The notes: generated from the letters alone by a model not told the origin. Positions 206 to 50,300 are shown, numbered from the stretch's first letter. The stretch: 64,000 nucleotides of DNA from Saccostrea cucullata (GCF_032062105.1 NW_026930139.1:930001-994000); one strand, 5' to 3'. Translations and numbers: made by a program.

Positions 206-3200
206 TCACTCCTGGGAAAACTCCATGTTGTCAGAATAATCAAACATCTCGCTGTCCTGGCCGATGCCGGAGTCACTATTATAAGGGGCGGACACACTAC
301 AATCAAACAACATACAGGGGCAGTCAGAAATGACCCAGCCAAGGGACCCACGGCAATCAATGGGAAGGGGCATATGTCCCAGTGGGAAAGGCATTACCTT
401 TTGTTTCAGAGTTTTTTTCCTTTTACAGAATATGTGATTTTTCCAGGGTGATTTTTAGCCAAGGGTTTTACGCTACTCTCCTCATTCCCTTTACAGAATA
501 TGTGATTTTTCCAGGGAACGTGGAAATACATGTAATTCCAATTAACAAATGCTTGGTTGTGCATGTACTTAATTTTATTTTTTTCAAAAAAGTTGGAATT
601 CTAGCATTAAAAAAGGCATTTAAGCAAGAAAATATGTGTTGCATAATTTTTGAAAGTACATGTAATTGCCCTGTGAGATTTTACACATCCTTAAAATTAC
701 CCCCAGAATTACGGATATGAGAATCAAGAAAACGTGTATAGAAAACTAAAAATCAAAAGGTATGAGAAAATACATTTAAGATAAACGGTGTTTTGTAACT
801 GTCCGCAGAGAGAGAGAGGGATAAACAGACAGAGCTATAGAAAAGCTGAGCTGTTTCCAGCACCACCTGCAATTTAATGACACCAAACAAAACAAGCCAC
901 CCAGCCATGGCAAAAATCAAACTGCCAGCTTGTGGAAATAAATGTCAATGAAACAATAAAAATCATGATGTACAGATATTATTTATCTGACAACAGTTTA
1001 AGTGCACAGCAATATGTACATAAATATTACAACACCAACTGAAAACTCTAGTCAATTTAGTAGATTAATTCCACATACCTGTATGCCCTGCAGGTGAAGA
1101 AAACAATTCTCTTCAGCTTCTTGTTGTAGAAAAAGTAGTTAAATGACCAAATGCTGCCTTCTTCTCCAAAAGGGTCTGAGATCAGGTCAGGATTGTAGCT
1201 GTAGGAATGAATCATACAAGCATCTTAAATCTAGGTAATATTAATATTATATTAAAAGTATGCATTTATTCTTTTATTGTATTATATGTGTCTTGTATTA
1301 AAATACCCCACTTCTGGTGCTAGATTAAAAAGTTGATTAAAATTTTAATAATTTGTGTGTAAACAATAATTAACAAGTTACCTGTGAGTATTATTTACCT
1401 GTAGATTTCACAATCCTGGAGATTGATTTCCTCGTCAATTGCTGCCCATAAAGTTTGTTTCAATCCAGCGAACAAATCTCCAGCAGCGGCGTTCAGCTCT
1501 GTGTCTACTGTGTTCACAACCCACTACAATAACAAAACAACATTATATATAAACTATAAAAAAATCAATGCTTAACATTACATAATGATTTCACTGCTGC
1601 ATCTCATCGGAAAGATACAATTTTTTGCAAATATTTACTTTTGTGTACATGTACTTAATAAACAATGACATCACTGAACATTATCAACATATAACATGAA
1701 TTTTTCAACCAGTTTTTTTTTCAAATTTGAAAAGCAGTCTTTTTCATCCATTTTGGGAAAAATGGCCACATTTCTTGTGTATCTGGACATCTCTGATTTG
1801 GGATTATGAGAGATCATATTGACCACTTACTTCAATGCTTGGCTCCTTGCTAAACTCCTCACTTTTGGCATTGCTGAAGTCATAGTCTGGATTGAAGGAG
1901 GCATTCAGGGTAGAAATCAGGTAGAACAGTGTTTTGGTGGGAATGGTGTCACACAGATACCCCTCACTCTCCACGGAACCAAAACTCTTACTGTACGGCC
2001 TACAAAACAGTGTACGTAATATATTACACCAGCTCTCATGTTATTAAGTAAATTATATAATCTACATATAAAATAAAGTCATTCTGCTAATTTGATGCAG
2101 TTACAGATTTATCTTATTAAGTTCTATCCTGTTTCTGTATTAGATCTGGACAACTGCCATCTATGTCAATATCTAGATGCACATGGTGTGTCCTTATATG
2201 TGTTTACTTATTAATGAGAATTTAGGCTTACTTGGTTGGACTGTGGGACAGGACTGTTTGGGGAGGGGATAGAGCCTGGAGGTCCAGCGGTCCCACACCC
2301 CCCTCCTGACTGATCAGCTTAAAAAGCTTCTTGTCATTCCCGGCCATCTTGCAAGAGTAACTCTCAATTCTGAAAAAAAAAATAAATATTAACATATTAA
2401 TGGGGTATTAAAAAGACAAATTAAATAAACTACTATCCTAGAAATTAGAATCAACATCCATGTAACATTATCATTGATGGTGCTTTTAAATAATTTCTAA
2501 GATCACTGTATTTTTATTGTACGTGTATAAACAATGATAAATAAGCCTGTGTTTGAGCATATTTTTTTTTTCCACAATGAACTAACTATAATAAAACACA
2601 GTCACATCAAAGAAGTCATCATCTCATTGACTCAAGCACTTCTTTTGTAGAGGTTTCATTATTAACTTTTTTATTTTAAATGATAGGTATTCAGGGGTAG
2701 AAACTCTACAGAATTGCAACTTGCAAATAATTGCGAGTACAAAAAAAGAACAAGCAAATTTCACTAGGGGAAAGTGTTGCTATTTCGGACGGGGGTGTTA
2801 TTTCGGACAGTCAATAAAGAGCTTTATCACTTTTTCTCTTGTGTTATTTATTATGATATTAAAACTTACTTCTGTAGATAATACATTTACAAAATGGTTT
2901 ACAAAAAAATCTTTGCGTGTGTCAGCTCAGGTGCGACTTGTTGCCATAAATAAATGACCTTCACCGACTGTGCTGTGGATGACGCTAATATCCGTCTACT
3001 TTCAGTTTGACAGGCAAAATGGTGCACGGTTGAGATAATTGGTTTTCTGCTAAAATTTACTTCTAAAAAATTATAAATGTGAATAAATTCCATTTAAATA
3101 ATTATTTTCTTCAATATTTCATAAAGAATTATCTTGTAAATGGAAATAATTAACCGAAATTGAGGTGTCCGGAATTACAACACCTCTCTGAGAGACAGAA

Positions 3201-5022
3201 AACGTGACTAAAATTTGACCCATTACTGGCTTTAGACCTTTTATATATTTCGATAAACTTGCATTACTGACCATAACTTGGTTTTTTTTTTTAATTTAAA
3301 AATATTTAAAACGAACTTTTAAAATGGTTGTGTTATTTCTTTTTCTTCATTTTTTTTAAAAAGTGGGGGGGGGGGGGGGGGGGGGTGATAAAGAGAGAGA
3401 AAGAGAGGGAAGATCGAATCTAAATCTGCCAGTGTAACATACCTGTTCAGGTGTTCAGTGCTTAATATTTTAAAAGCCTTCTACTTACAAAGTTCACATA
3501 AATATAAATAAATGAAATTTACGTACCCCCTTTAATTATGCCATTCAATTTATTGTTTAAAAAAAATAAACAAACATGCAATGTAATGTAATTAAGATGT
3601 TCATTTGAAATGGGTTTCTCAGACACTATACATTTCTTAACGTATTACAGTTCTACAAAAATAAAAATGCCACCCCCAAATTAAATTTGAAAAAAAGCCG
3701 TTTGGAATTAAATATAAATTGAAAACGTACTTCGACCCATGGTTATACATGTTTGAATTTAACTGACCACAAGGTTCTGTAGATGTTATATACACTGTAC
3801 TTGGTAGGGCTAGTCTACCTGGCAAAAGATATTCAGATGGGTTTTTTCTTTTGAAAACACCTCATTATCATTTTTTATTCCCCGATGTCAAGCAATATCT
3901 GACATTGAGAAAATATATACATATTTAGCATCTGAAGCGTGATTTATATCCTTCTTTTAAATGTCTTTTTTTTTTTATTTTAAAACCTTAGAATTTTTTA
4001 CCAGACTACGATATACTTAGTCTAGTACTTTGATGTAAAAAAAAAATCAGTGTTCACATCTTTTTTTTAAAAATTAATTTATTTTGGTTAAATAAAAAAT
4101 CAATTGAAAGAAAAAAAGTAAAAGAAAAACCCAAGAAACAAATGTGAAGAAAGTAATAAATGAAATAATTTTATTATATATCTGCATATCATATATGTGT
4201 TTGCTACACATATTTATCCTACATATTGTTCACGCTACTTATAATTTTTGCGGCAAATACAATTTTTTCTATTGAAAAGTGTTTATATTTTATTTCATAC
4301 ATCCCGACAAAAGCTAGTCAAAGTTCCCTGCTGTAATTAGCACGACCATCGTGTAATCTGTGCGACACAGCAGCAAGCATACCTTTTTTACCCACTGTCC
4401 GACATTGTAACACCCTGTGTCCGAAGTTACAACACCACTGTCCGAAGTTACAACCTCCTACCTAGTGCTGTTTAAATGCGTTTACTAATGATATTATCTC
4501 ACGAAAAGAGCCGATGTACCACGAAAATAAGTAGCGGAAGGTTTTCTGCATCGAACGGTGTATAGCATGCCTATATTTAGCGGTAAATGCCAAGTATTTC
4601 CAAAAAAGCATTCTGAAGTGTCCGAAATATCAACACTTTCCCCTAGACTTCTTGCAATTTTCATATAAAAAAGGCTTTGTATATTTAGATAAATGGACTC
4701 TCAAGTTTTTTCGAGTTCACAAATTTCAAACTCGCAATTTGGATATTCTAAATTGGATTTTGCAAGTTGACTATACAGTAAATTTTGAACGCTGGGTTTG
4801 CCTATCATAATGGGTAACCTTGTCCTTCTAAACAACCTACATTTCACTGAACACCTGTAGTCATGACAGTGAAACTTGGGTTGGGACATTGTAGGTTTAC
4901 TAAATCTCCAAATCACTCAGTCTTATAGCTATGTCATACCTTCCTTCTATCCTGGAAGTCTCTAGCTGCATATTAAGAGCACTGTTGATTTGTTCAAATC
5001 TTGAATTTTCCAAGAGCTTCAT
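206..5022 (-). CDS. MAF1: MAF1, repressor of RNA polymerase III transcription (6 coding exons)
   Basis: Exons 5022-4940, 2369-2232, 1999-1831, 1523-1399, 1198-1079, 296-206 have GT-AG boundaries and compatible phases. Translation: [126 protein letters not shown], i.e. MAF1 boxes A/B/C, then an acidic tail. Confidence 0.96.
2767..4643. mobile_element. Non-autonomous TIR DNA transposon (TA-flanked, Tc1/mariner/pogo-like) in the first coding intron of MAF1
   Basis: 24-bp TIR ggggaaagtgttg(c/a)tatttcggac with TA on both sides. Subterminal repeats tgtccgaagttacaacacc at about 4396-4460. No transposase ORF. Confidence 0.85.
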
Positions 5023-6509
5023 TTTAAATATCGAGTGTCACAAAAAATAAAGAACTGTCAAAGGTAAACAAAGGGAAAGAACAAATTAAAACAAGGATAA
5101 AGAACGACTCGGAAGTCTAAAGTTTTTCAGAAAACTTTTAGGGTGTGAATAAAAAGAAATCCTCTTCAGTGAGTCTCTTTTGCTTGATGAGAAATTTTCA
5201 ACTTTCATTGCATCAAAATCACAGAATGCTATATCCTCCATTGATGGCTGAATTATCGATAATCAAAATTAAAACGCGCAAATCACACGATCAAACAGTG
5301 ATAATAATGCTGGAAGTTCTTTCTTTTTCCAACAAACCACAATGTCTGACTCACTAAAACAGAATTCAATCTCGAAAATCTACGTTTTGATCCACTCTCC
5401 TTCTTCTTCCTTGAAAAATTATTTGTAAACTTGACCTACAAAAAAATGCACCCACAATGCAATGCGTTGATTTATATAATCCGTTTCTAAAAAGCGAAAG
5501 CTGACTTTTAACTCTGACGCATGCTTCGACGTGTTTTCCAAATTAGTAAGAATGTATAAAGATTAAATCAACAGATTTCTTTTTTGTTGTTAACACATTT
5601 TTAACATACTTTTTACGCTAATTAAATCCTAACAGCCCGGTGTTTCATAACCATGATAACAGCCCAGTAAACAAGAGTAATATTTACCCTTGGGCTAGAA
5701 AAGTACATATTAATTTTTTACTTTTCTGCAATCATATGTTCATCATGTTCATGTCTGGGATGACAAAACTAATGACAATACAAAAAATAATATTGTAGAA
5801 TGTTTTTTTTATCGCTACTATTCTCCTGCTAAAACATTTTATAGTTCAGTTGTAAATACATGTAGGTAAATCCGTAATCATGGTAACGAAAACTAATTAA
5901 TCAGGACTTCGCGTCAATATCTCTGTTCTGAATTGTTGGTTTTCAAAGCATTTTTTGAGGGACTTAAGCAATTAGACTGGGGGAGGAGGGATGTATAGGC
6001 CACGTACAATACTAGGTCAAAGCACTACAGAGACCCTTATACTAATATTACTGCTATATATCATAGTATATATGTCCCTGGTAATTTTTATTGATCAATG
6101 AAAAATGCACAATTACTAAACGTTGGTGAATTCAGTTCTTTGTATATGCTGTCCTCCTTGACATATTTCATTTACTGATGAAATCTGCAACATGACTAGT
6201 TTTAAGAAAAAGCAGGTTATAGAGGGAGAATAATAATGTGTACCTTTTAAGATATAAAGTAGAAAAAAAAAATCAACCATTGCCAATTTTAACTGACAGT
6301 TAAACACAGATCGAGTTCTTATACACAGACATGGGTTTTAGTATTTTCTATTAGAAAGTTGACGATCAACGTCTTAATTGTTTTTAGAAATAATTGAATC
6401 TGCAATTTGCAATTCCCTCCCGATAATACTACAAACATTACTTACTAGTATTTGGTTCTATTCTTATGCTGCAAAACTGTTTTAGGTTCATTTATCTACT
6501 AATATTAAT

Positions 6510-7125
6510 AAATATATGAGACACAACATTGCCCGTATGGCAGATAATAGGGAGGGTTGAAATTTCTCAAATGTTAGTCAAACTTCATGGTCAAGGTCAA
6601 AAGATTAAAAAAAAAATGTTGGTTTCCAATGGAAGGTCTTATATCATGCACGAATAAACTCGTGAAATATGAAAGCCCTAGTACTATCTGTTCAAAATTT
6701 ATGGACAAGGATATACATGTATATATATATTTTTTGAAAATGGGTCAGACACTAAGGTCAAGGTCTAAAAGTAAAAAAAAAAATCTCCATGAAAAGGTCT
6801 TATATCACAATGAATATATACAGAATAGAATAGAATACGAAGGAAGAAAGCAAAAGTACCAACATGTTCAAAAATTATGGCCAAGGTTAAAGTTTCGTAA
6901 TTTTTTGCAAAAGTTGGTCAAACTACAAGGCCAGGGTCAAGAGGTCATATTTGTTGGTATCCGAAGAAAGGTCGATCTTGTCTCAAACCGGATATGAAAG
7001 CCATAACCCCAAACACTCTTGAAAGTTTTGGGCAAGATGATTATTGTTTTTGCAGACAAACAAACCAACAGTTTGACAGACAGATGGACAGACGGACATA
7101 TACCTTGCAAAAACGAGAGCATAAA
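6510..7125 (+). mobile_element. Pearl/CvA-like (Helentron-type non-autonomous) element, degraded
   Basis: Degenerate core repeats with gtcaaggtca motifs followed by a GACA/GACG microsatellite. Same family as 17586-18048 and 34119-34572. Ends are approximate. Confidence 0.6.
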
Positions 7126-7608
7126 GCTAGTGAGTGAACAGAGGATCCCCAAACCTGCACTGGGGAAATCATTATCAAATCAAGATATAGACTATAGAAG
7201 GCAATTCTATGACACCTAATTTATCTCCAAACATTGAAGAGTTCAGCTGGAGGAGCAAAGACGTGACAAGAATCAAATAAATTTTCCTGGTGTGGATAAT
7301 GGCCTTGACTTAAAGGTTTGTATGCCGTATTTATCTGTATAAGTAATAACTATACCATTACAAATTGCTGGCTAACATTATAGCAGTATGTCGTCATACT
7401 TGTACGGTAATTACCATACCACCTATGACTCACTGAATCCGAATTTTCTTGTCTCATTTTTAATATTTTTAGTTGTCATAAGTTATTGGATTTTTCATTC
7501 CAGATCTTTTAAGAGTAATGAAAAATGTAAAGTTTCTGTCTTCTGATTATGTTAAAGAATGAACTTTGTACCTACTTCCAAGAAGTAAACAGTGTTACTG
7601 TTAATATG

Positions 7609-7919
7609 AACTAGAGGTACTGTGAGCAATGAGCTCACTAAATGATACCCCCGCCTCCCATATATGAATATAATGGCAGTGTCCATGTTTTGCTCTGGAA
7701 AATCCAAAATATATGTCAGATCAAAAAGTAAAATAGGAGGTGCACAATGGCAATATGTAATAAAGATTCTCTGAAAGTTTTATTAAATTTCCTTCAGCAG
7801 TATGAGAGGAGTTGTGGATAAGAGATGGGTACCCCAAAGTGTAACAGATGGACGGACAAACGGACGGACATACCGATTACTATATACCCTTCCGCTTTTC
7901 AAGCTGGGGGTATAATAAT
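7609..7919 (+). mobile_element. Short pearl/CvA-like element
   Basis: Head aactagaggtactgtgagcaa, gacggaca microsatellite, terminal hairpin tataccc...gggtataa. A reverse copy of the same head lies at about 9830-9849. Confidence 0.6.
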
Positions 7920-8379
7920 AATTTTAAAGTAATGACAGCTTTCCAACTATCCATCAATAAAAAAACCCCAAATAGTAATTATTCCTCAGGGTTCTACAGT
8001 TTTGATCCATGTTCCATAAAATGATGGTATTGTTATATGCTACTCCCACTGGGGGATTTAAAGGGGGGGGGGGGGGGGGCAGGGGGCCACCCCCACCCTT
8101 TGTGTCCAAAAAATACACAAAATTTGATGAATCAATGGTTTTTATGGTGTGGCTGAGAACCCCTACCCTCACCCAAACTGGTCCATCCCTTTCTAGATTT
8201 CGGGATCCACTACTGACACCATATTGTCATAGTGCATAGGAATATCAAGACTGTCCACTTCTATAAAGAGAAAAGCTACACCAATACCAGGATTCAGAAT
8301 GAGATAAACTTCATCACCTTCCCAATTTAAGACCTTTTGATTGAATTTTGTAAAAAAAAAAAAAATATTATTACATTAT

Positions 8380-8714
8380 TATAACAGTTGGGGGAAAATG
8401 TCAGTCATATTGGGATTGAACCTGGGACCTGCTTCTAACTGTGCAGATACTCTAACTGACTGAGCTACAGGACTTACACACCCTATCCCTGTTACACTCT
8501 TCCCCTTTTTCTCGAGGTTTTCTGTCTTGAAAAGCTCACCGAGTCTTTTCTAAACCACCAGTGAGCTTTATTGTTGGGCGCCAAATATAAAAGGTGGGGG
8601 AAAATGTTGGCCAGGGACTCGAACCTGGGACCTCTTGTTAACTATGCAGGATCTCTGTTAGAGATTCTTTAACCACTGAGATACTGGGCTTGTGTGCCCT
8701 TTCCCCATTAAACA
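8380..8714 (-). mobile_element. Degraded TRIM with tRNA-derived LTRs (Helenus-like), tRNA-Lys PBS
   Basis: Direct repeats 8380-8496 and 8586-8714, each with A/B-box-like tRNA sequence on the minus strand. Between them on the minus strand: PBS tttggcgcccaac and PPT aaaaaggggaagag. No TSD visible. Confidence 0.7.
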
Positions 8715-10470
8715 ATGAAGTGCATAGAAGCTTTGGGATTGCTAGTTTGTTTCATATGCATGTAGAGTAAGGTAACAAATTGTGTCCAATTTGTTCTTTG
8801 TTGTAAGGTGGAGCTTCATCTATCCCCCTACAAAATCAACTTGTATCAATAACCCCCCCCCACACACACACACACAAAATCAGCTTGTATCAATTTGCCA
8901 ATAAAAATGGCTTTGAAAAGTAAGTAGCAGTGATAAAAATTTTGAAAAACATGTACATGTTAACATTCAAGCCTCGATGGGATTGATGAAGAACTTTAAG
9001 ATATCTTAGTATGGGAGATACCAACAATACCATGGGTAAAATACTTCAAGAGGAATTCTTGTCTACTTTCTGACTAGATGTAATATTAAAAGTATATTTG
9101 CTTATGTGTCTTATGTATTTAGATGTAAAAGATTAAAGATTTAAAGATCTTATTTTTCTTTCCTTCTCATAATTGTACCATTTTGTTTGAACAGGAATGA
9201 TAAACTGAGTTTGAAATCTAGCATGGGCTATATTTTTTTCCAATTTTGCAGAATTGCAGTTTGTGAAAATAACTCCTTTTTCTGTTTCTTAAAATTACTG
9301 CAGAACATTTAATCTTTTGTAATAGAAGAAGGCATCACACGATTGACGGCAGTTATTTTTTTTTATTCTTAATGTTGAGGAAAAATATAAGGATCTTGAC
9401 CTGACCTTGCTTCTAAATTAAAATATTCAACTTTAATCTAATCAATGGATAAGCTTTGGAAGCTCTTACTTGATACAGTAATTGTTTGTGACCCATGGGT
9501 GTGCCCTGACCCTGAACCAAACTGATTCAAGGTCACAAAAAAGGTATAAAATTCTATTTTTCTTAGCAACCTAGAACTTTTTGATGATCCTGAGGCCTAA
9601 GGTCATTTCACCAAGTTTAAAGTTACTAAAAACAAATGTAAAATATTTGAAATTCATGACAGGTCTAACATTTTCCAAAGAAGAAACATTGGATGTCAGT
9701 ATTTCATCTAAAGATTACTTATGGTCAGAGGATTTGTCTTTTTTTTTTAAAAAATCAAGATCGTTCTGGCAACTATAAGGTCACATTCGCAAAATTTGAA
9801 TGAGCACTTTAAAAAATTATTATGATAGCTTGCTCACAGTACATTTAGTATAATTGGAATTTAAAGGTAAGTATGGTTGATTTTTTTTTTTCGTAAGCAA
9901 ATTCTTGTGAAATAGAGAAGACATAATATTTTCCTCAAAAAAGAAAAGCCACGTTATTTTATCAAGATAGTTTCTTACATTGAAGTTTATTCAACTCAGT
10001 GGTTTTTGCTATATATGGATGATCATTGGGTAAAATTTTTATACTTTAAGATGACAAAGTTAAGACAGAAAACATGTATAATGTAACTTTTGATCTCTTG
10101 CCAAGGTTGTAAAATAAATCTAGACCACATGTATGATTTTTTGTTTACATAAAAGTTTTATGTTAATTTTTCAAAGGACAGAATTTTTCAATTATGTATA
10201 TATTTACATGTATGGTTTATTTATATATACACTAAGTATTTAAATTGAGTGTTGGCTATTTTGATCCAGGAAGTTAAAATGCCGTTTACTTTTTAATGCT
10301 CTATGAGAAGGCTGTAAAGAGTCAGTTATTAAAACGACAGGATGATGAGATGATTTTGATTGAGCTCTTTCTTGGCTTTAAATGGAAAATCCAATACCTG
10401 TTTTACTAAATGCGTCAACAGGTAGTGTGACTACTCGTGAGGCATGTCTTGATTAAGAAATACACGTATC

Positions 10471-13400
10471 ATGGAGCAATCACCAGCTGAACAGGTGGAT
10501 ACCCACCTGAGTCTTGGACAGCTAAGTGGTAGAGAGATTCTTTGTGTGACTACCTGTGAGATTTATGTTCCTCTCCCCGAGGTGAATCAGGTGGGGCAGG
10601 GGACACTGGAGAAGGTCAGAAAGGGGGACAAGCTTCTCCACCCACACGGAGGTCTGTGTGACTTGTACCTCCTGACTTCTCCTCAAGATTCCAACATAAA
10701 ATCTCTAGCTATGGACTTCTATAGTTCTGAGCAATCGGTACTCTCCCGAAAAAAGGATGCTATTATAAATGTTTTTTGCAAGGATTATTTTTAGCAAAAA
10801 TTTTCTTCATGAACAATTTTTTTTCCAGATTAAACTGTCTATCACATTGAACAACATTACTAAAGATACTCTAAGGGTGTTTATCAGAAGCGACTCATGG
10901 TTTGAGTTCTGGAGTCACCTTGGCAACCGGAATCACAATACAACCATTAAGTTGTGCCAGGATGATGAACACTGGAAAGATTTCTCTTCTCTTCTAAAGG
11001 AACGGGTCAGCTTCCTTAAAGAGTGTTTCAGAACCAAGGGAAATCCTAATCAAGGTGTGTATCGCAAACTCAGGTACATTTCATTGAAGCAGGTCCATCA
11101 TGTAAAAACACAAAAATATATAGTACAAAAAATTAACAGTTATATTTGTAGAAATTTATATTCAGACAAGATAAGTAAAAATTAATTCTAGAATTTTCTA
11201 AGTTTAGTTGGATTGCTTGAATTGCAGAGCATATGTACTACAGGTAATGTTAGGTTACAAAACAAAGACCACCTTATTGTAGTTTGACAAACAGAAGAAT
11301 GATGCATGTAATAAATTCCATGATATTATATAGTCCTTGGCTTATGTGTACTTGGTCACTGAAGTTAAGTGCATTGAACAGCCTTGTAAATAACATTTTG
11401 AATGAAGAAGAGATTTATTAGAGATTCCATGCTTTTAAGAACTGGGAAGTTAATCAAAAATTTAGAATTATGATGTTTTCTTTTGTAGTGTTTGAACTTG
11501 TTGCATTTCAGTCTAAGAGGACTGCAAGCACCAAATCTAAGCAAGAGTTGAATAAAAGTGAACCACCAAAAGAAAAAATACAGGGCACAGATACATCAGA
11601 ATTGGAGGAAAAGGGTGTTATATATAGATTTCAGAAACAGTCCGACAGTGATTTATATCAGAAAGACAAGGAAGATAAAATTCTTCATAGAACACAGTCC
11701 CAGGGGGAAATCCCTGAGAAGGATAGTTCTAATGTTTCACCTCCAAATACTCAAGGAGTTCTAGTCTCTCGTCCAGTAAAGATAAGTGAGTCAGAAACTG
11801 ATGTGTTTGAACCTCCGTTTTCTCCTGCCAATTTTAAATTGATAGACACTAAATCAAAATTATTTGGCAATCTTCTCCTGCAAGAAAATAAAATAGAATC
11901 CAAGAGCAATGATTTAGAATCAACAGTAAAACCAAACAGCGTTGAAGCTGCCAAATATTTGAGTGTTTTTCAGCCTCAGCATGTGCCTTCTCCTCAGTCT
12001 TTGAAGGCTGAGATAGAAAGAGATTCCAGTATTTATGAAAGTGAAAGTGGTGATTATGAAGACATGATGGACCAAGAGAAAGCCATTCAGAGACTAGTAG
12101 AGTTGCTGCAGGCAGCCATTAATTCAAATGATAAAGAGGCTGCAGCAAAGCATGCTGGGAGTTTAGCAGTCAGTGCTGCAAAGGTGACCATTACATTAGA
12201 TAGCAGTAGTCTGAAGAACCCTAAAGACAAAGAGTTCAGGTAACTAGGCAGATTTCTAAGGGCACACTGTAGTACATCCAAAATTATGCTAATGATATAA
12301 ATTTAAAATGTGCATTCTTGTGGAAAAAGGAATTTTTCTATTAACTTGATTAAGGAGACTTGTATATAAAAAAGGCAATGTAATTCAATGCAATTTTAGT
12401 TGTTTTTTTTTTTTTTATATTTCTGTAAAATTCTTTTGCAATTGCTACTGTCGACATTAAAATCATCTTGTTTGTTAAATTCCTTCCTGACTAATGAATT
12501 TGAATTACAATTGAGCTACAGGATAGAAAGGCAATCAAAACATGCTTCTTTAGTTGCTATGATGTAAAATAGTTCTAATATTCTGAATTCGGGAACCTAT
12601 TCTGTATATTAAGTTAAACTATGTTCTGTGAAAAGATGGTTTGATCGATTGTTTCTCAACATCCTCCTATCCAGAGGGTCCACTGAGTTAAAAGAGAAAA
12701 AATTTTACAGTAAAATTTGTCTTATCTGGTCACCAGTGGTTTTAAAGAAAATATTTCACGTACATGCAGTTATTGATAGTGGTAACCTTAACATGGTTGA
12801 CTGTACTGAGATGTGTGCATGCTTCATTTTACAGCATTAAAGTGTACGTAGAAGACAGGGAAGCCTCAGGAGGATGTATAACTCTGAATGTCAAACCCTC
12901 AGACACAGTCAAGGACCTCAAGCTCAGGGTTCGTATTATAAGATTCACTTATGTACTGTTCTTCATTTATTAAACAATTCAAAAACTTTATAGGTACACT
13001 TAAAAAGTCCTTCTCTTTAGCATTTTTTGTTTAAATTTAGGTTTAAAGAACACATACGAAATTGTATTTTTTTTGCATAAAATGCAAATGTGTTTGAATT
13101 ATGATGAATAGTTATTAATTTTTCTTTTTTTTGCAAATTCACAGCTGTAGGATACATTGAAATTATTATTAATTTTTTTTACTGTGAACAGATGTGTTTG
13201 AAGCACAGTTTTCCAATGGAGGTCCAGAAGTGGATCATAGGGAAGCGTATCCCCCCCGACACTGAGACCCTCCAGAAGGCTCGAGTGAGTCAAGGTCAGG
13301 CAGTCTATTTATATCTCATCTCACCCAAGTCTGTGGGACTGACCAAGGAGAAATTTATGGAGGACCGACAAAAAATGCTTCATAACCAGCGTGAGTCTTG

Positions 13401-16400
13401 TTTTGTACAGAACCACGAATATAGTCATGTTTATGTGTACATTAATGTGAGTTATCAAGGTATTTTTACAGTATCCTGTAAACCAACTATCCTTTGCATA
13501 ATCTTTTATTTGCAGCTCATTAATTTGGGATCAATCTTTCATGATAAATTGTAAGGACTGAGGAAGTGTTCTCTTCAAATACAAAGTAAACTCAATACAG
13601 TGTAGTTTGTGATGTTTAATATTCCTGAGTCAAAGTAGGTCGTGAAAACTGGCGGATATTTCTCGCATGCAAATAAAAGATGATTTACAGTATTTTGCAA
13701 GTATTTGACTGAAGAATTATCTTACTTTTTCTGATTTCATTGACAAATTTTCAATGCTCGTAACATAAATGTACATGTATGTGGCAAGTTTTTAATTTTT
13801 TTTGTTTTTTCAGCTCCAAATGTTCAGTATCAAAAGCAGGGACCCACAAACTTTGCTGAGAGTGGATGTAAGAATACATATATAGAATATTAGATATTTT
13901 ATCCTTGGATATGAATATTTTTCGGGAATGAGACAAGATTTGTAAATTATTCGTAAGTGCAAAAAACATACATGTAGTTTCAAAAATAAAATAAATTCCC
14001 TATCCAACTGTAGAATATCTTTTTATTTCATTTTTTTTTTACTTTCCTTAAGTATTACAGTTGAGAGATGCTATAGCTAAGCTGTTGCTAGATTGAACAT
14101 TTTAAAATTAAAACAGATATTAAAATCAATTCTGAGAACTTTGGCAATTTTAGACCATGTGAGAATTGTTATTTACTGCTGTGAAGTGCTGTCTTAAAAC
14201 GAAGTATTTTCTTTCTAGCAGTCTTAATTACAAAATCTCAAGTATTTATTTGGGCCTCTTTTCATGTTTCAAGTGCCCAATAGTATTCTCTGGTCTATCT
14301 GTGAAAACTTTATATGACCATACAGGTTTATATTATTACATGGTTAAAAGACAGAGGAAGATAACCATAGATTTTTTTTTTAAAAAGTCACTTCTTGAAA
14401 TGGTAAAAGCTTGTAATTAATTACATGTATATGACCAATATTGACCATTGTGATGCAATAAGTGAAGCATTTTGAAATTATACAGATAAAACCATATTAA
14501 GGGATCCTGTATGAATGTCTTAATTCTTTAATTATATATGTAAGACTCCAAAGTCCGATGGTGACACCAAAGTCCGATGGTCTCGCCAAACCCCGATGGT
14601 CTGTGCCAAATCCCGATGGTTTGTTGTCGGTACGGATGCCAAAGTCCGATGGCTCGTTTCCTATGAGACACGTTGCGCTAAAGTGCGATGGTCTGACATG
14701 CCAAAGTCCGATGGTGTGGAGAAACAATTAACGTTTATGACGTCACAATAATTGGATGTCATTCACTGATGCCGTTGTCCTGCATTCAAAAGCCAAATTT
14801 TCTGAATTGGTCCTCGCATACAATTTTACTGATTTTGCTTATTGCTTGCACCTTCCAAAGATATTAAGGTTAGTTCTTGCACACCACTCGACTGATTAGG
14901 GATAGTCTTTGCTTCGCACTATCCCGAGAGATTAAGGGTTAGCCTTTGCACACTAGTCGAGTGATTAAGTTTAGTCTTGCATCCACCCAAGATATCTAGG
15001 TTATAGTTGTTACACACTTTTTGAACGATTAGGATTAGTTTTGCGCGTATCTGAGAGATTAGGGTTAGTTTTCACATTATGATACTTATTTATTTAAAAC
15101 CTTGGCCTGGCGCGGCGTTGAGGTTTGGCGCAGTAGTACTATGACGTCATAAACGTTAATTGTTTTCCACAAAATCGGATTTTGGCGTGTCAAACCATCG
15201 GGGATTGGCGTGTCAGACCATCGGACTTTGGCGTGACCATCGGACTTTGGAGTCCCATCACACTTTGGAGTCCTTTTTATCTAAGTTAAAATTGCCCCTA
15301 ATGCAAAAAACAAAAACAAAATCAAAGTTTCATAACCCCCAATGTAAAAAAAAAGTTTGTTTTATGTACAGCTTACATTCCAATGGGTACCCCTGTGACT
15401 CCTCAGACCCCCCACAGTGCCCTACCCCCCTCCGGACAGAGATCTGAGCCTTACAGCAGCAGTTCTACAGGGGGAGGCCTGACCCCCAACCCTTGCCAGC
15501 AGGGTCAGATACAGCAGCAGAAGTCCAGGGATGGTGCCGGTAAACCGAAGGCCTCTCCCCAGGTCATCAGGGAGGGGTCAGTAGAGGGGTTTGAAGTGAT
15601 TCCACCCACAGCTGTCCTGAGGGGAATCCCCCAACCTCAAAACAAACAGGAGACCAAAATTCAGGTAATTCCAGTATCAAGCACTAGGAAAGACATTCAC
15701 TAAATAATATTTTCATATTGTTTAATATGGCTGTACGTTTAAAAATAAATACCGAATAATTCATTGTACTGATCATGGCTTTTCATTTTGTTTTGGAAAA
15801 TCAAGCTCAATTTTGAGTGAGGCATTTTCTTCAACTGGACTAAATATTTCCCAGTGTTTTTCTTTAAGTATTACTTCCAAATATGTTTAGGAAGCATATA
15901 TTACAAAACATTCCTTCGATAACTTAGGTTTCATTATGAATTGAATTTTATAAACAAATGCTAAAAGAAAATAAAGTCAGTTCAATTTATCAAATTTTGA
16001 GGTCTTTGAAAGTTCATCATAAAAGATGTAAATATCATTATATCTAACCACAACGGGACTCAAAATCAGTTCGCTATATCCGTAAATTTGTTATATCAGA
16101 GTTCATTATAACCGTAAAAATAAAAAGTTACAAAGATTTGTAAAGAATTATGCCGGGGACCCAGAAAAACTTCGCTATATCTGTGAATTCGCTTTATCCG
16201 TGTTCGTACTAAACAAGTTTTACTGTAGTGTATTTTATAATGAATGAAAAGGCTCATGCATTTATGCAGTCAACAAGTTTAAAGAACTTCTTGCTGCTTT
16301 GAATTATATGTGTACATAACTATTTGTCATAACCATTTTTTTCCTTTCTAAATTAGGCTGGCTGGGTTTGCCCTGCCTGTACTTATATTAACCAGCCAAC

Positions 16401-19400
16401 ACGGCCAGGTTGTGAGATTTGTGCCACAAACCGACCACTGGACTATCAAGTGCCTGAAGGATACAGAATGACCAAAGAAGAGGAGGAGAGGATCCAGAGG
16501 GAGCGTGAGCAGGAAGAACAAACTCAAAGGGTAGGTTTTAAAGAAAGGGTGTAATTATATACAGGGTAGTTAAACTCATGAATTCTTAATTTCAGGTACA
16601 TTGTATATGTTACAAGATTATCTTTAATGCATGAATTATATTCAGATGTTTATCTGGGACAGCCCGTAACACAGAATACATACAAATGCAGACTGACACA
16701 TCACATAGATGATCTGTATTTTTTGTAATTTGCTGAAAATACATGAAATTATTAAAGGAATTGGCCCATTTTTTTCTGTGTCATTTCTGCATCATGCAGT
16801 AATTATACACCTTGTTCAGGCTTTTCTCTTTGACACTTTTCCAGGCCAGCGTGAACAGAGGTCAGGAGAGGGGTCCAAGAGAAAATACTGACGAGGAGTA
16901 TTATGGTGACCTTGAGGAGCGAGACCTGGCAGCCATCTTGGAATTGAATGAAAACTTAAACAGGGCCAGAATTAGGTCCCCTACAGAGAATGCCCTCACC
17001 CCACCCCATGGGCCACCCCCTGACCCTCATTTGATGGACCTTGGAAATGTCCATAGAGGATCAATGGACAATTTACAGTTTCCTCTGGACAATAGACATA
17101 TAGACTGGAATGAAGAACATATATAAAATAATATACATGTCTAGGATGGAGGGGGAATATGAGGAAATTAATTTCATATTTCAATATCAGTCATTTGAAT
17201 TGCAGTTTGAATGAAATCATTAACACAAAGTTACAGTTATACAAGTATTCACATGTATGTTCTGTGTTTTATGAATTATGTAATTATGTATTAGTATCTT
17301 CAAAAATGTTTTTGTCAAAGCAAAGATCTACAAGGGAACAATAAAATCTTATTCTATGTAAGTGTCATATTTTTGAAAATAGAAATACCATAAGAGAAAA
17401 TATACCTAGGGAATTGAAACCCATGTACAGTATACCACCTATCCAAAAAGAGTTGAATTTCAACAGATACCGGTAACTGTAACAAGTATTTCCACTGATT
17501 CAGAATCTAAAAGATGGTAAGACATTTATTTGGTGGAATGTCACATATTGAAGAGGATGTTCTGTACATTAGATCCATATAGAAAACAAGATGTGTTTGT
17601 GAAACACTGATGCACCCATAAGGCAGCTTATGCTGAGGTTTGAATCTTCTCTGTAAAATATGAAAGGCAGTCCTAGTTCTAACTGTTCAAAAGTTGTGGC
17701 CAAAATTAAAGTTTTTAAAAAGTGGGTCAAACTCTAATGTCAAGGTCAAAATATTTATACCCACTGAAAGGCCTTGTCACAATGAATATACATTAGAAGT
17801 ATGAAAGCCCTTGCTCCAGCTGTTTAAAAGTTATGACCAAGATTAAAGTGTGGTATTTTTTGTAAAAGAATGTCAGACTCCAAGGTCAAGAGGTCAAATT
17901 TGGTGGTACCCAAAGCAAGGTCTTGTAACAAGGAAAAATACCTGTGAAATATAGCCCACTCACTTAAAAGTTGTGGGCAAGGTGAAAGTATTTGCAGACA
18001 AGCAAACAGCTAGACAGACATGGACAGACAGACAGGGCAAAAACTATATAAAAACTACATGTATAACAAGTCCAATGACTGTTCTACTGTGCATGCAATG
18101 TACATGTATTATTTCTGATTTAACTGAAACAAATCCCACTCTCTTCCTTATAATCAAGTTTTACTGTAAATTCTTTGTTTTATTCCTGATTTAATTGAAA
18201 CAAATCCCACTTTCTTCCTTATAATCAAGTTTTACTGTAAATTGTTTGTATTACATGTATTCCTGATTTACCTGAACAAGTCCCCATGTATTCTTTATAA
18301 CCAGATTTTACTGTACATTGTACATACAGTATTATTTCTGATGTAGCTGGAACAGGAGCGAGAGGACCTGGAGAGGAGGCTCAGACAGGAGAATTTTGAG
18401 ATTTTGATGAAAGCTGAGGACAGCAGTCTGATTGGTAACTCTCAATCCTTCCAGTGTCCCATCTGTTTTGATGACATCTCACCAGGAAATGGGGTCATTC
18501 TCAGGGAATGTCTTCACACATTCTGCAGGTAAAATACTCCTCACATTAGGTTTGAGAAACAGCCATTAAGTCCCACAATTTTTTCACTGACTAAGGAATA
18601 AATTTCTATATTCCGGTTTTATAGATGGCACAGTCTTTGATCGTATATTTTGATGAGGTTTCAACAGGGAGATTTTTTAGTGTATTTTACGAGGTTTCTA
18701 TTTTTGGTGATACAGGGATATTTTTTACCGTAATCTGACAAGGTTTCTATTTTTACAGGGACTGCCTACAGGGGGCGGTGGTACACAGTGAGGAGGCAGA
18801 TCTCCGCTGTCCGTATCAGGATGACCACTACGCTTGTAATGCCTCCCTTCAGGATAGAGAAATTAAAGCGGTCAGTATATCTGTTAAAAAATTTACTTTA
18901 TACAGTTACCTGTATAATTAAATTACCATTAAAATGATTGAATGCATTGCCTTATAGATCATAATAAACAAAAAAAAGGCTGTAAATAAATAAAACTCTA
19001 AAGCTTTGATGAGTAGTGTGTGGCTAAATGAAATGATGGAAATTACAATGTACACATTTCTATGCAATGACACTGTGAACATAAATATTTTTGTGTTATT
19101 GTCATTTGACCTTGACAGCTGGTGGAGGCCAGTGTGTACGAGAAGCACCTCCAGCGGAGCCTAGTAACGGCCGAGAGTCAGGAACAGAACAGTTTCCACT
19201 GTAAAACTAACGACTGTCCTGGCTGGTGTATCTACGAGGACCTCGTCAACTTCTTCAAGTGCCCGGTCTGTAACAAGGAGAACTGCCTGACCTGTAAGGC
19301 GATACATGAGGGCATGAACTGTAAGGAATACCAGGAGGACCTGAGGATCCGATCCTCCAACGACAAGGCCGCCAAGCAAACCAATAAAATGCTCAAGGTA

Positions 19401-19928
19401 ACCACAGCACTCTGTCTTCTGTTTGTGATGTCATTCAATTCTTGGTAAATAATGCATTAAACAGTCCCCGGTTGTAGAAATAATAAAACATATTTTATAA
19501 CATATGCTCATCATATATGGTGTATTTTCTAGGCCCTTTGTAAAAAAAGGTTAAAAAGCTACAGTTTACCATGATTCTTTTTTAGGATCTGCTGAAGAAA
19601 GGAGATGCCATGAAGTGTCCTAAGTGTGAAGTGGTGGTACAGAAAAAGGATGGGTGTGACTGGATAAAATGCTCCATCTGTAAAACAGAAATCTGCTGGG
19701 TCACTAAGGGGCCAAGATGGGGACCTCTGGTAAACATCCTACGTTGTTATAGCATATTTAAAATTCTTTGTTAAAGTTTCAGACTTCTCTGATAATAGAA
19801 TATAAAATTATTGAATCTGTTACAAAATACATGTACCGGTATTTATGATGAAAAAAATTGTTTACTGTAGGGTGTCCGATATTAGTGGTGGAAATCTGTG
19901 CCATGAGAACTGTAACAATTGTCATTAG
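10471..19928 (+). CDS. RBCK1: HOIL-1/RBCK1-like RBR E3 ligase with SHARPIN-like N-terminus (PH-like, LTM, UBL, NZF, RING1, IBR, RING2)
   Basis: Exons 10471-10737, 10829-11054, 11489-12239 (this junction less certain), 12835-12928, 13192-13390, 13814-13867, 15372-15664, 16357-16530, 18347-18528, 18759-18870, 19119-19397, 19586-19729, 19871-~19928. Motifs: LTM ([25 protein letters not shown]), UBL ([31 protein letters not shown]), NZF ([21 protein letters not shown]), RING1 ([18 protein letters not shown]), IBR ([31 protein letters not shown]), RING2 ([37 protein letters not shown]), C-terminal CHENCNNCH*. The last exon is out of frame as given. Confidence 0.93.
13476..13690. mobile_element. 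Small MITE with CTGTAAA...TTTACAG termini
   Basis: Imperfect short TIRs, right end followed by TA. Resembles 40322-40529. Confidence 0.45.
14544..15254. mobile_element. Foldback-like non-autonomous element with modular long inverted repeats
   Basis: Left arm has tandem ccaaagtccgatggt units ending in aaacaattaacgtttatgacgtca. The right arm is the inverted equivalent. An internal degenerate array of about 40 bp (gattaaggttag..ttgca) spans about 14840-15075. Confidence 0.75.
16845..17126 (+). CDS. Putative alternative terminal exon giving an RBR-less, SHARPIN-like isoform
   Basis: Strong acceptor (cttttctctttgacacttttccag), phase 0 like the NZF-exon donor. 93 open codons to a stop, no convincing in-phase donor, and AATAAA at 17340-17345. 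Confidence 0.65.
   Translation, partial: ASVNRGQERGPRENTDEEYYGDLEERDLAAILELNENLNRARIRSPTENALTPPHGPPPDPHLMDLGNVHRGSMDNLQFPLDNRHIDWNEEHI
17586..18048 (+). mobile_element. Pearl/CvA-like element
   Basis: Head aacaagatgtgtttgtgaaacac, 2-3 degenerate core repeats (gtcaaggtca, aaagttatg), GACA microsatellite and tail. Confidence 0.7.
18108..18356 (+). repeat. Degenerate tandem repeat (about 70-80 bp) spanning the RING1-exon acceptor
   Basis: Three units of tatt(t/c)ctgattta(a/c)(c/t)tgaa(a)caa.tcccact...ttttactgta lead into tatttctgatgtag|ctggaacag. Confidence 0.7.
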
Positions 19929-20613
19929 GCTTAAGTCAGTAGGGTGTGAGAACTGTAACAATTGTCATTATATTAGCTGTGCCATGAGATGCATTAGGCT
20001 TAAGAGTGTGCCATGAGAACTGTTACAATTGTCATTAGGCTTAAGTCAGTAGAAGGGAAGCTGTGCCATGAGAACTGTAACAATTGTCATTAGGCTTAAG
20101 TCAGTAGAAGGGAAGCCGTGCCATGAGAACTGTAACAATTGTCATTAGGCTTAAGTCAGTAGAAGAGAAGCTGTGCCATGAGAACTGTAACAACTGTCAT
20201 TAAGCTTAAGTCAGTAGAAGGGAAGCTGTGCCATGAGAACTGTAACAATTGTCATTAGGCTTAAGTCAGTAGAAGGGAAGCTGTGCCATGAGAACTGGAA
20301 CAATTGTCATTAGGCTTAAGTCAGTAGAAGGGAAGCTGTGCCATGAGAACTGTAACAACTGTCATTAAGCTTAAGTCAGTAGAAGGGAAGCTGTGCCATG
20401 AGAACTGTAACAATTGTCATTAAGCTTAAATCAGTAGAAGGGAAGCTGTGCCATGAGAACTGTAACAATTGTCATTAAGCTTAAATCAGTAGAAGGGAAG
20501 CTGTGCCATGAGAACTGTAACAATTGTCATTATAGGCTTAAGTCAGTAGAAGGGAAGCTGTGCCATGAGAACTGTAACAACTGTCATTAGGCAAAAGTCA
20601 CTGGAAGGGAAAG
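19896..20613 (+). repeat. 55-bp minisatellite built from the RBCK1 C-terminal codons, stop and proximal 3' UTR
   Basis: Unit gtagaagggaagctgtgccatgagaactgtaacaattgtcattaggcttaagtca ([14 protein letters not shown]). The ccatgagaac motif occurs at 20011, 20066, 20121 ... 20506, 20563, with partial copies from 19901. Confidence 0.95.
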
Positions 20614-47340: not shown

Positions 47341-50300
47341 TTAAGATGATGGCATCTGTGGCACCACATTGGCAGTAGTGTGTGGTTCATAGTTGACTAG
47401 TCTCTGCCCCACCAGATATCTACAAATATACAAATACATATAACAGATGTATGATCAAACAATAACAAGAGACCCACAGGCCACAACATTAGCCTGAGTC
47501 ACATAAAAATGAAATTTTAACAAGCCATGAAGTAAAATTCCCCAGTTTCAATAATTTAGAATTGCAGCTCCTTGTGGTGAAAAATTTAACAACTTGGACC
47601 TTTGTAGTTCTCATAGAATCATAAACACATACTGTTTAATATCATGTCTCAGGATGACTATAACAAGCTAAAACAAATCTTACTTGTCATTTTTGATGTG
47701 CTCATAAAGTCTTTTAAATTGGCGAATTTGGAATATAAGGATCAGTACACCAATTATGCAGGCAAGAAGGAATGGGTAAATTCTTCTTAAAACCAAATTT
47801 TCAACTTCAAATGGAAAACCTAAATTTAAAAAAAATTGAAATATTAAAAACAGATTTTTTTCTCCCAGAAGATCTCAGAATAAATCCTTATTTGTTACAT
47901 TGTTGAATTAATTAATGAAAGTAATCAAACACATGGTACATGAAAATGGTGTAAAAACTTTACAATGCAGACATACTGTTTAAAGCAAAGAGCTATCCTA
48001 CCTAAGAAAGGGACTATACTCCTGGCTACCACATACGGAACAGATATTGACATTCCTAGCACCCCAATAACAGGGGCACATAACTTTGTCAGGATAAAAC
48101 GAAGGTTCATGTTACGAATGCCATCATTATACACCTGAAACAGAACGTATAAACATGCATTTATAATCATAAACTCCTAGTGAATGTTATCTTGCTCGAC
48201 ATTAGATGTGAGCACCACTTACCTGTTCTATGACCCTTTTGAGCCACCACTGAGGCCCCATCATTGTCACAGCAGTCACTATTTTGGCATGAAGTACACC
48301 AAGTGCCCAGTCCTATATAATGTGGAGAAAAAATATCAAAGAATGCTTGCAAAAAGCAGGATTAAATTTATGTTTGTCTTTAAGATAGAAAACATGTATA
48401 ACAAGCAATTTGTACATATTTTAAAGACAACAATCATTCTTACCTGCCATGGAAAAAATATGGGAGTTTGGTCGAGAGGTACTCGAAGTGGTGCTACCAC
48501 TACCAGTTCAAACAATAGACCCAGTAATAATGGCACCATTCCAATCAACAGGAAAGCCACAAGAATACATTTAGAAGCCTAAATAAAACAAAGATACAAT
48601 ATTCAATCTTTCTGGCACAAATAAAAATATCCCCCATCCCACTGAAAGAAAAATTAATGGGTGTTCAACCCTTCTCAGAAAAATCTTTTTATAATTCCAG
48701 TAGTTGTATATGTACATGAATTTTCTCTTTCTTTCATTTTTAAAGAGGACACTGTTTGGCACATATGTACATGAACTTGGTAAAAACATACCAGGAAGAC
48801 CCACTCTTTGACCTTGTTGAGAATAACTGAGGTGCCCTGGGGGATCCAATTATATAAAACTGTCCCTATCCTCAACACCACCCAACAGACATACAGACCA
48901 CAGGCGGCCGTGTAAAGCTCGTGGATCTTGGCTTCTCCCATCCAGAGGGACATCAGCTTACGACCCACAAATACTGTCATAGAAATATATATCATAAGCA
49001 ATGAGCAAAACATTCAAACAACAAAGTACTCATTAAAGTAATGAATAGTTAATTCCAATCTTACACATAGTAACATATGGTATACTGACCTGGCAATACT
49101 AAGGAAACCAAACTCATAGCAAACAAAGTGAAACATAAACAGAGGACAAGGAGCACAACCTAAAGTAATAAAGCATGGTTTATTAATAACAATGGAGAAT
49201 CTAGAAAAGTGGCATCATTTGTTCCTCAAGATTTTAAATATCTACAGTAGTGGATTGCAAAAATAAAGGCAATCATAACCTCCCATGAGGCATATTCTTA
49301 ATATCAATTGTAATTTTTTCAAAAATCTTACTCTGAGTGGGAAAAGTGGTGGTCTTTTATAAGACTGGAATCCTGTAGGTCCCCCACCCTGTAACATGGC
49401 GACATGGGCGGCTCTCAGTCCCCCACCTGCAGGGGGTGGGGCAGGGTTATTGGGTGCCGCAGGCTGGGCCTGGACAGCTGGTTCACCCTCAACCACATTG
49501 TCCTAAAATGTTACAAATAAATATCATTAATACTTATTAATAGGTGATGTTATAAGCAGTCAGTATCACTCCGCATAAATGGAAACAGTTTACAGCATAT
49601 GTGAAAGTCTCTATATAGCAATATTCTTGCATACTTTAACAATATACACTTTACCAAACCACAGTATACTTGCTCCACAATTATATTAAATAACTGAAGT
49701 AAAAAAAAAAATGCAAGTCTATGCTTCTCCTTTTACAGTGAAATTCATTTTTTTTATTTCAGTGAAGATAGCACAATCATATTACCCCATCATGTAGTGG
49801 TGCATCTCCTAACAGGTATGACCTCAAACCCAGAAAATAAGCCACGCCCACAGTCCAGCCCCGTATCAACCCCTTCAGCCACATCCGCGTGTGTCCCTGC
49901 TCCAGTAAGGCAGGCAGCACTACTTGTAACAGAAGGAGCTCTAGGGAGAGTTCACTGACAGGGGCATCACTGAAACAAAACAGATACTCTGTAAACTCCT
50001 TATTAGAAGTTATCAACAATAGTTGTCCAGACAGGTACTTTAAAATTCAGTCTACCAGGAAATATTGACCAACTGAATCAAATAATGTATCAGTGTGTAC
50101 CTTGACAACATGACATGGTAAGGTAGAAATGATGTTAAGACTTTCCTAATGACTCGGGCAGGCAACCATAACATTAATAGAACTGTGCTTCCAAAGATCA
50201 CCTAAAAACAAAAAATACCGGTAATGGGTGTGTAGACAGATTGCTGGAATAAAAGGCTTGACATGGAATAAAATATTCACTGCTCACAAGAGTACTTACA

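Follow-up and report, generated by a model that had tools for sequence, protein, structure and literature searches.

Does the close neighbourhood of MAF1 and SHARPIN in amniotes go back to the bilaterian ancestor, and was the gene that then stood beside MAF1 a SHARPIN, an RBCK1 (HOIL-1), or a precursor of both? The question is raised by a stretch of 64,000 nucleotides of the oyster Saccostrea cucullata (GCF_032062105.1, NW_026930139.1:930001-994000; hereafter the window, in whose positions coordinates are given unless a contig or locus is named), where MAF1 lies head-to-head with a gene for an accessory subunit of LUBAC (linear ubiquitin chain assembly complex). The answer that we consider probable, short of being secure, is that the oyster accessory gene represents the undivided ancestor type of SHARPIN and RBCK1, that its pairing with MAF1 is ancestral in bilaterians and was never broken, and that mammalian SHARPIN is a SHARPIN-lineage gene that lacks the RING1-IBR-RING2 (RBR) ligase module.

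The divergent pair in the oyster genome

In the sequence-only reading of the window, MAF1 on the minus strand (ATG at 5022) and the accessory gene on the plus strand (ATG at 10471) had been described as divergent neighbours, and these strands and start codons were borne out; 5,448 bp separate the two start codons, and the genes, with no other gene intervening, lie 5' to 5' and are transcribed away from each other. Maf1 and the RBR ligases are unrelated families (Pfam), and each haplotype holds one MAF1 locus and one LTM locus, with no other in the genome. A second contig (G000:C21937:53,800-67,700) repeats MAF1, the whole spacer and the accessory gene in inverted orientation, with the same spacing and at 96-100% identity; this copy is probably the other, uncollapsed haplotype, and the recurrence of the pair indicates that the adjacency is not an assembly accident.

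MAF1 is an intact, spliced and transcribed gene. Its six coding exons on the minus strand are all bounded by AG and GT and give 726 nt in frame; the Pfam family Maf1 (PF09174) matched four of the six exon pieces (E 6.2e-6, 1.3e-15, 6e-9 and 2.4e-17), with exons 3, 4 and 5 above the cut-off of 28.9 bits and exon 2 at 26.9 bits, and gave nothing on the 27-aa first and 31-aa last pieces. RNA was taken from three oligo-dT runs (X9-X11, raw reads) and one run in the form of contigs, all under the same species label and aligned to 4900-10800; the first intron was confirmed by 34 reads of run X10 that splice from 4940 to 2369 and match 2340-2369 in 29 of 30 places. The features of MAF1 are as follows.

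206-296 (-): exon 6, acidic C-terminal tail and stop (206-208); open frame, AG acceptor
1079-1198 (-): exon 5; Pfam Maf1 64 bits, E 2.4e-17; AG/GT
1399-1523 (-): exon 4; Pfam Maf1 36.7 bits; AG/GT
1831-1999 (-): exon 3; Pfam Maf1 58.5 bits, E 1.3e-15; AG/GT
2232-2369 (-): exon 2; Pfam Maf1 26.9 bits; read-supported junction to 4940
4940-5022 (-): coding part of exon 1, ATG 5022-5020, from the sequence; GT donor 4939-4938; read depth 5-10
5023-5293 (-): exon 1, 5' untranslated part; reads end near 5293

The accessory gene is predicted to encode an RBR ligase of the HOIL-1/RBCK1 type. Its exons in the window were searched one by one rather than joined, and whole-protein work used P0288, an oyster protein of 926 aa with the NCBI name "RBCK1-like", whose comparison with the window by tblastn gave 12 segments of 94-100% identity within 10471-19732. 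The path to it led through the IBR exon, which matched 719 proteins among representatives (E up to 0.001); one of these, P0003, is 96% identical to that exon and, with its cluster, was the starting point of a further search that yielded P0288. The RBR module was found by Pfam both on the exons and on P0288, and residues 670-924 matched the HOIL-1 chain 8eaz_A with 312 bits; the NZF was confirmed against the HOIL-1 NZF chain 3b08_B as well (55.7 bits). The UBL is clear from the match of P0288 residues 362-496 to the HOIL-1L LTM-UBL chain 5y3t_A (48.2 bits, E 3.8e-12, vs. 25.2 bits to Sharpin), and the Pfam LTM match is weak, reaching 13.9-19.1 bits on the exon, the genome and P0288 against a cut-off of 27.5. 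The features of the gene are as follows.

10471-10737 (+): coding exon 1, N-terminal PH-like region (first half); P0288 residues 1-90, 98.9% identity; no Pfam or PDB match
10829-11060 (+): coding exon 2, N-terminal region (second half); P0288 residues 90-164, 100%
11488-12237 (+): coding exon 3, disordered linker and LTM; P0288 residues 165-414, 100%; Pfam LTM 15.9 bits, E 0.012, below cut-off
12830-13389 (+): UBL in two exons, 12830-12931 and 13189-13389; tblastn, P0288 residues 362-496 vs. 5y3t_A
13816-15664 (+): two linker exons, 13816-13866 and 15371-15664; tblastn, P0288 residues 514-628
16357-16533 (+): NZF exon; Pfam Zn_ribbon_RanBP 30 bits, E 3.1e-7, cut-off 27
16845-17123 (+): candidate alternative last exon; C-terminus of P0291 (isoform X3 from another oyster), 92.6% identity
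18347-19732 (+): RBR exons, RING1 18347-18529, then 18751-18873, IBR 19119-19397, RING2 19586-19732; Pfam RING, IBR, IBR_1

With the alternative exon in use, the protein would stop behind the NZF, as a SHARPIN-like form that lacks the RBR; P0271 has the same end, and public annotation of two other oysters includes isoforms without the RBR (P0291, P0271). Short and long products of this gene may therefore predate the vertebrate duplication that is discussed below. Past the last exon, at 19815-20587 (+), open frames repeat the C-terminal ligase motif CHENCNNCH several times.

Descent of the accessory gene and probable loss of the RBR module

A phylogeny of the UBL and NZF regions had been proposed as a check on the origin of SHARPIN, and the two trees, of 26 and 29 proteins hand-picked from about 446, speak for a vertebrate-specific duplication that produced the SHARPIN lineage and RBCK1. 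In the first tree (26 proteins, 546 columns) the vertebrate proteins form one clade (support 100/100), which splits into an RBCK1 type (mouse, bichirs; 99/98) and a PH-bearing type (100/98); P0288 and seven other mollusc proteins make up a separate clade (98/96), and amphioxus and echinoderms fall outside the vertebrates. The second tree, restricted to the region from LTM to NZF (29 rows, 270 columns), recovered the vertebrates (99/97), the RBCK1 type (99/95) and a clade of long and short PH-bearing forms (94/78), in which the short PH-LTM-UBL-NZF proteins of chicken (sharpin X2), rattlesnake, frogs and teleosts are nested. There the teleost short genes appear to stem from a duplication of the long gene that is confined to teleosts (100/97). 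The two vertebrate types share a clade to which the oyster gene does not belong, and the oyster gene is thus not a one-to-one ortholog of vertebrate SHARPIN; on these trees the SHARPIN/RBCK1 duplication falls on the stem of the vertebrates, the oyster gene is a co-ortholog of the two subunits (a pro-ortholog), and loss of the RBR is secondary.

The link between the PH-bearing clade and mammalian SHARPIN is given by the NCBI names of the bird proteins; in addition, the passerine PH domain matched the PDB SHARPIN chain 4emo (E 1.1e-8), and the LTM-UBL match was slightly better to Sharpin (117.7 bits) than to HOIL-1L (105.3). Sharpin_PH, LTM, UBL, NZF and RBR occur together in the sturgeon protein P0042 (PH E 9e-51) and in the passerine protein P0072, which carries the NCBI name sharpin (PH E 3.7e-24). 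The amphioxus protein P0043, named SHARPIN, has the same set of modules, with its PH at 26.2 bits against a cut-off of 27; Sharpin_PH was found in none of 15 mollusc, echinoderm, nemertean, Hydra, tick and other proteins scanned. A precomputed Sharpin_PH is recorded in proteins of about 700 aa from sturgeon, bichir, gar, bowfin, many teleosts, coelacanth, turtle and birds (named sharpin), and bichirs carry both types on different contigs, their RBCK1 without PH being 533 aa long. By these domain assignments the SHARPIN-lineage copy keeps a predicted RBR in fishes, coelacanth, turtle and birds, and the RBR appears to have been lost from the lineage secondarily, more than once. The suggestion that SHARPIN is an RBR gene truncated at its MAF1-linked locus, made from the sequence alone, fits the trees, the retention of the RBR in non-mammalian vertebrates and the published adjacency to MAF1. 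In the literature searched we found no statement that SHARPIN and HOIL-1 arose by duplication or had an RBR-bearing ancestor, nor of an oyster LUBAC gene, and two reviews searched for evolution-related terms held nothing on the origin of SHARPIN and HOIL-1; the long RBR-bearing proteins of birds and fishes are already plain in public annotation.

Two side observations concern other members of the family. Teleosts have a second PH-LTM-UBL-NZF gene of about 435 aa (among P0322-P0426), on a contig other than that of the gene of about 710 aa; some sources call it "sharpin and rbck1 related", and its lack of the RBR parallels mammalian SHARPIN. The RBCK1-like proteins of arthropods (ticks, bugs, crustaceans; P0036, P0040, P0033, P0053, P0067, P0138, P0139) start with a CAP-Gly-like rather than PH-like region, confirmed by Pfam for P0036 (E 5e-14); capture of this domain from a CYLD exon was considered and rejected, the tick domain being nearest to TBCB and CLIP chains.

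The N-terminal 165 residues of the oyster protein are likely a divergent PH domain, because they sit where the amphioxus and vertebrate relatives carry one; the direct evidence is weak. The SHARPIN PH chain 4emo gave no PDB sequence match, whether by exon or with P0288, and a profile made from vertebrate PH regions found only amphioxus. A profile of mollusc N-termini had its best outside matches at about 10 bits, within vertebrate PH regions. An hhalign comparison of six mollusc N-termini with the vertebrate PH aligned 52 columns in the C-terminal half (score 24.1, P 0.0055), a score that none of 200 column shuffles (slightly fewer of them independent) reached, the maximum being 19.9. The same comparison was negative for echinoderms vs. 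vertebrates (P 0.13), molluscs vs. echinoderms (0.39) and Hydra vs. all three (0.047 to 0.51). An AlphaFold model from six sequences had a mean pLDDT (predicted local distance difference test) of 35 and was unusable, and the look-alikes in the Atlas, clusters of PH, WH1 and EVH1, scored 0.75-0.79, a level that shuffled proteins also reach.

The spacer and the age of the pair

According to published accounts, MAF1 adjoins the SHARPIN gene in chicken, mouse and human. In mouse, Cyc1 and Maf1 are the flanking genes of Sharpin, and it is Maf1 sequence that lies on its 5' side (PMC7371178); a table of human proviruses lists one inside SHARPIN, 424 bp from the MAF1 start (PMC4741842, table 1); and on chicken chromosome 2 the coordinates given place the end of MAF1 at 148,590,058 and SHARPIN at 148,590,419-148,636,483, a gap of 361 bp, with HGH1 on the opposite side of MAF1 from SHARPIN (PMC13560938). 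In a tabulated 540-kb region of coho salmon chromosome 1, maf1 and rbck1 are adjacent in the list, together with tbc1d20 and trib3, in a form that does not distinguish the paralogue type (PMC8102513, table 2). In a literature listing, 18 papers mention RBCK1 together with 20p13. "Positional ortholog of SHARPIN", as the oyster gene had been called, is a fair description of its place beside MAF1; by descent, according to the two trees, it is equally the ortholog of RBCK1.

We infer that the pair is ancestral and not convergent. A single LUBAC accessory gene would have stood beside MAF1 in the bilaterian ancestor; a duplication on the vertebrate stem would have given rise to the SHARPIN lineage and to RBCK1/HOIL-1; the SHARPIN-lineage copy would have remained the neighbour of MAF1 and, in fishes, coelacanth, turtle and birds, would have retained its RBR; and mammalian SHARPIN would be this gene minus its RBR exons.

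What lies between the two genes bears on how the pair was maintained. The sequence-only reading had seen only repeats there, which holds for several stretches from 6557 to 9442 and fails for 5296-6500, which is single-copy. In genome comparisons the best 40 candidates were scored each time; the features of the spacer are as follows.

5296-6500 (no strand): single-copy spacer beside the MAF1 start, candidate MAF1 promoter and only candidate for a shared promoter; genome self-match, with matches only to itself, the second-haplotype copy (96%) and one 50-bp stretch
6557-7098 (no strand): dispersed repeat with a copy also in an intron of the accessory gene, 17653-18034; blastn within the window, 65-66% identity
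7609-7919 (no strand): high-copy repeat of about 310 bp; 62 of 63 non-self matches here, 68-98% identity; 11,167 first-look candidates in the genome
8046-8649 (no strand): two repeat pieces, 8046-8231 and 8377-8649; 38 non-self matches on the two stretches together
9101-9442 (no strand): repeat pieces; of 38 non-self matches, 36 lie on 9300-9442 and the other 2 on 9101-9296; 1,589 first-look candidates
10400-10421 (+): possible 3' splice site with pyrimidine tract, TACTAAA and CAG, 49 nt before the ATG; sequence only

Within 8377-8649, heads of short interspersed elements resembling tRNA were judged by eye, and ARAGORN called no tRNA there; in 9443-10470 no repeat was scored among the best 40 candidates.

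In runs X9-X11 the read depth is 5-10 in 4900-5096 and 16-25 in 5097-5293, falls to 0.04-0.41 in 5294-5490, and is zero across 5491-6475. Most of these reads are only 95-99% alike to the window, and fixed strain differences cluster at 5253-5288, so that the apparent end of MAF1 reads near 5293 may be partly an alignment effect. The repeats draw many partly matching reads from other copies: such reads have loose ends at 6865 and 6895 in the 6557-7098 repeat, and the 7609-7919 repeat reaches a depth of 40-50 and shows, in each run, about 300 loose ends at 7609. No unique transcript was found between the two genes in the three runs over 4900-10800. The region 5296-6500 would hold the MAF1 promoter, and the acceptor-like site at 10400-10421 suggests an upstream non-coding exon of the accessory gene. 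A shared promoter around 5400-5900, which the sequence-only reading had considered probable, finds no support in these reads. Our best guess on how the pair is kept, held at well below an even chance, is that regulatory DNA in the single-copy 1.2 kb beside the MAF1 start serves both genes and, jointly with this, that the accessory gene has a non-coding first exon spliced to 10422.

Several observations weigh against an ancestral pair with a SHARPIN-type partner, or against its tight coupling. The pair is known from one invertebrate genome, and its vertebrate counterpart from papers; neither tree contains a mammalian SHARPIN, which was also not among the 120 best matches in the protein listings; and Sharpin_PH (PF16764) had no Pfam match on the oyster exons, on P0288 or in the whole genome. 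The oyster spacer measures 5.4 kb, about a third of it repeats, vs. less than 1 kb in amniotes. Coding exon 1 of the accessory gene has a read depth of 0, except for 0.76 in one run, so that the depths of the two first exons in the same runs (16-25 for MAF1 vs. 0-0.76) give no sign of co-expression and argue against a tight form of it, a comparison that is tempered by the under-coverage of the 5' ends of long mRNAs in oligo-dT libraries. In the oyster, HGH1 (PF04063) is on contig C10122 and CYC1 (PF02167) on C12967 and C12118, outside the contig of the window, and the genes that do surround the pair are CYLD, TFAP2, a PH+SH3 gene, a Rho gene, a PQ-loop gene and MARCHF6. CYC1, like the MAF1 pair, is present on two contigs.

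The strongest alternative, which we rate at somewhat below an even chance, accepts the pair as ancestral and gives the two genes separate promoters, the accessory gene starting within the non-repeated stretch at about 9443-10470 and the neighbourhood persisting passively rather than through a shared promoter at 5400-5900. It gains from the absence of reads across 5491-6475 in three runs with good coverage of MAF1, from the very unequal depths of the two first exons, from the four repeat insertions that the spacer has tolerated, and from the lack of a scored repeat in 9443-10470 itself; yet a good acceptor-like site 49 nt before the ATG suggests an exon farther upstream, the amniote gaps are below 1 kb, and coverage of the accessory gene is too weak to speak on its start.

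That the adjacency arose independently in the oyster and vertebrate lineages, by chance or convergence, and carries no information on the bilaterian ancestor is unlikely. With HGH1 and CYC1 on other contigs, only the pair itself is common to oyster and vertebrates; no tested 8q24.3 neighbour lies on the contig, the other neighbours differ, the pair has been seen in a single invertebrate, and its long spacer carries mobile repeats. In human, 8q24.3, which holds SHARPIN and MAF1, and 20p13 are paralogous regions (SCRT1/2, SLC52A2/3, TRIB1/3). Shared ancestry is nevertheless judged likelier because a given gene would be found among the two neighbours of MAF1 by chance about once in 10,000 cases (our own estimate, from tens of thousands of genes); the divergent orientation, moreover, is common to oyster and mouse, and hundreds of such pairs are reported as ancestral and mostly kept in molluscs (PMC3514665). 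An assembly artefact is highly improbable: the assembly is fragmented (23,869 contigs), but the full 5,448-bp spacer recurs with both flanking genes, equally spaced, on a second contig, and the contig that carries the window is 1.09 Mb long.

The most far-reaching form of the preferred, ancestral-pair reading goes well beyond these data, and we hold it to be doubtful as a whole: shared regulatory DNA would have held the pair together for more than half a billion years and would link linear-ubiquitin immune signalling to a restraint on growth and RNA polymerase III; ancestral short SHARPIN-like and long HOIL-1-like products would have been split between the duplicates, and the RBR would have disappeared on more than one occasion (in the teleost duplicate and in mammals); and CYLD, on the other side of MAF1 in the oyster, would complete a small linear-ubiquitin neighbourhood.

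The remaining neighbours are summarized here. The 60 kb beyond MAF1 hold CYLD, TFAP2, a TLDc-like gene, a kelch/BTB-like gene and a satellite; none of these is known to be an 8q24.3 gene. The positions of TFAP2 and of the neighbours inside the window are as follows.

23203-24578, 29321-29962, 36285-43127 and 47928-54244 of the window and L013 3-1211 (-): PH+SH3 gene (SKAP-like), intronless Rho, PQ-loop gene, MARCHF6 and TFAP2

None of these five is known to neighbour human SHARPIN or RBCK1. CYLD, with CAP-Gly exons and a USP domain, lies tail-to-tail with MAF1 (G000:C12276, about 915,200-925,000; L012 5236-9919 + and L011 4593-4880 +), and two of its exons matched only CYLD chains in a PDB sequence search (2vhf, E 2e-17). 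CYLD and the LUBAC accessory gene are thus within about 25 kb of each other, which may be chance; in human, CYLD is described as a deubiquitinase recruited to HOIP (PMC5413910). Farther out (L014 2-2612 and L015 4592-9924; G000:C12276, 880-893 kb) lie several kb of a tandem satellite, one frame of which translates as repeats of WREVTLLDNHINMQ.

Comparison with known gene pairs and LUBAC subunits

If the pair is ancestral, the SHARPIN-MAF1 arrangement would date to the bilaterian ancestor, and SHARPIN, not RBCK1, would be the copy left at the original locus; together with the trees, this would recast mammalian SHARPIN as an RBR ligase gene without its former catalytic end. The same reading predicts a LUBAC with two HOIL-1-like ligase subunits in birds, reptiles and fishes, and the locus would offer a divergent pair on which the widening of a spacer, from less than 1 kb to 5 kb, can be tested.

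Among known LUBAC subunits, vertebrate RBCK1/HOIL-1 shares with the oyster protein the order LTM-UBL-NZF-RBR; the oyster protein adds about 165 N-terminal residues and a long linker, and human RBCK1 is not beside MAF1. The proteins of about 700 aa in birds, turtle and fishes, named sharpin or PH-bearing RBCK1, resemble it in the whole module order from the N-terminal domain to the RBR, and both groups have short and long products (chicken sharpin X2 with 466 aa, the oyster isoform X3 proteins); yet the N-terminal domain of birds and fishes is a clear Sharpin_PH (E 9e-51 and 3.7e-24), whereas that of the oyster goes unrecognised by Pfam and by PDB sequence search.

The closest counterpart of the locus is the SHARPIN-MAF1 pair of amniotes, in which MAF1 directly adjoins a LUBAC accessory gene with PH, LTM, UBL and NZF, divergently in mouse as in the oyster. 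The chicken SHARPIN gene is long (46 kb), and the bird proteins named sharpin carry the RBR, as does the oyster gene. In contrast to the oyster, where 5.4 kb with repeats lie between the genes, the amniote gap is below 1 kb; mammalian SHARPIN is without the RBR, the outer neighbours CYC1 and HGH1 are not shared, and the oyster gene is an ortholog of RBCK1 as well.

On a wider scale, 595 conserved pairs of unrelated genes were reported from animals, of which 593 were traced to the bilaterian ancestor; 54.8% of the conserved pairs in human and 68.6% in limpet are arranged 5' to 5', and the limpet keeps 448-492 (Irimia et al., 2012; PMC3514665). The main text of that paper has no occurrence of MAF1, SHARPIN or RBCK1; its pair list is in the supplement and may already contain the pair. 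The likeness to these ancestral microsyntenic pairs, for example HSPE1-HSPD1, lies in the combination of two unrelated genes, a 5'-5' arrangement and occurrence in a mollusc as well as in vertebrates, and the MAF1-LUBAC pair of the oyster is a probable further member of this known class of conserved 5'-5' gene pairs.

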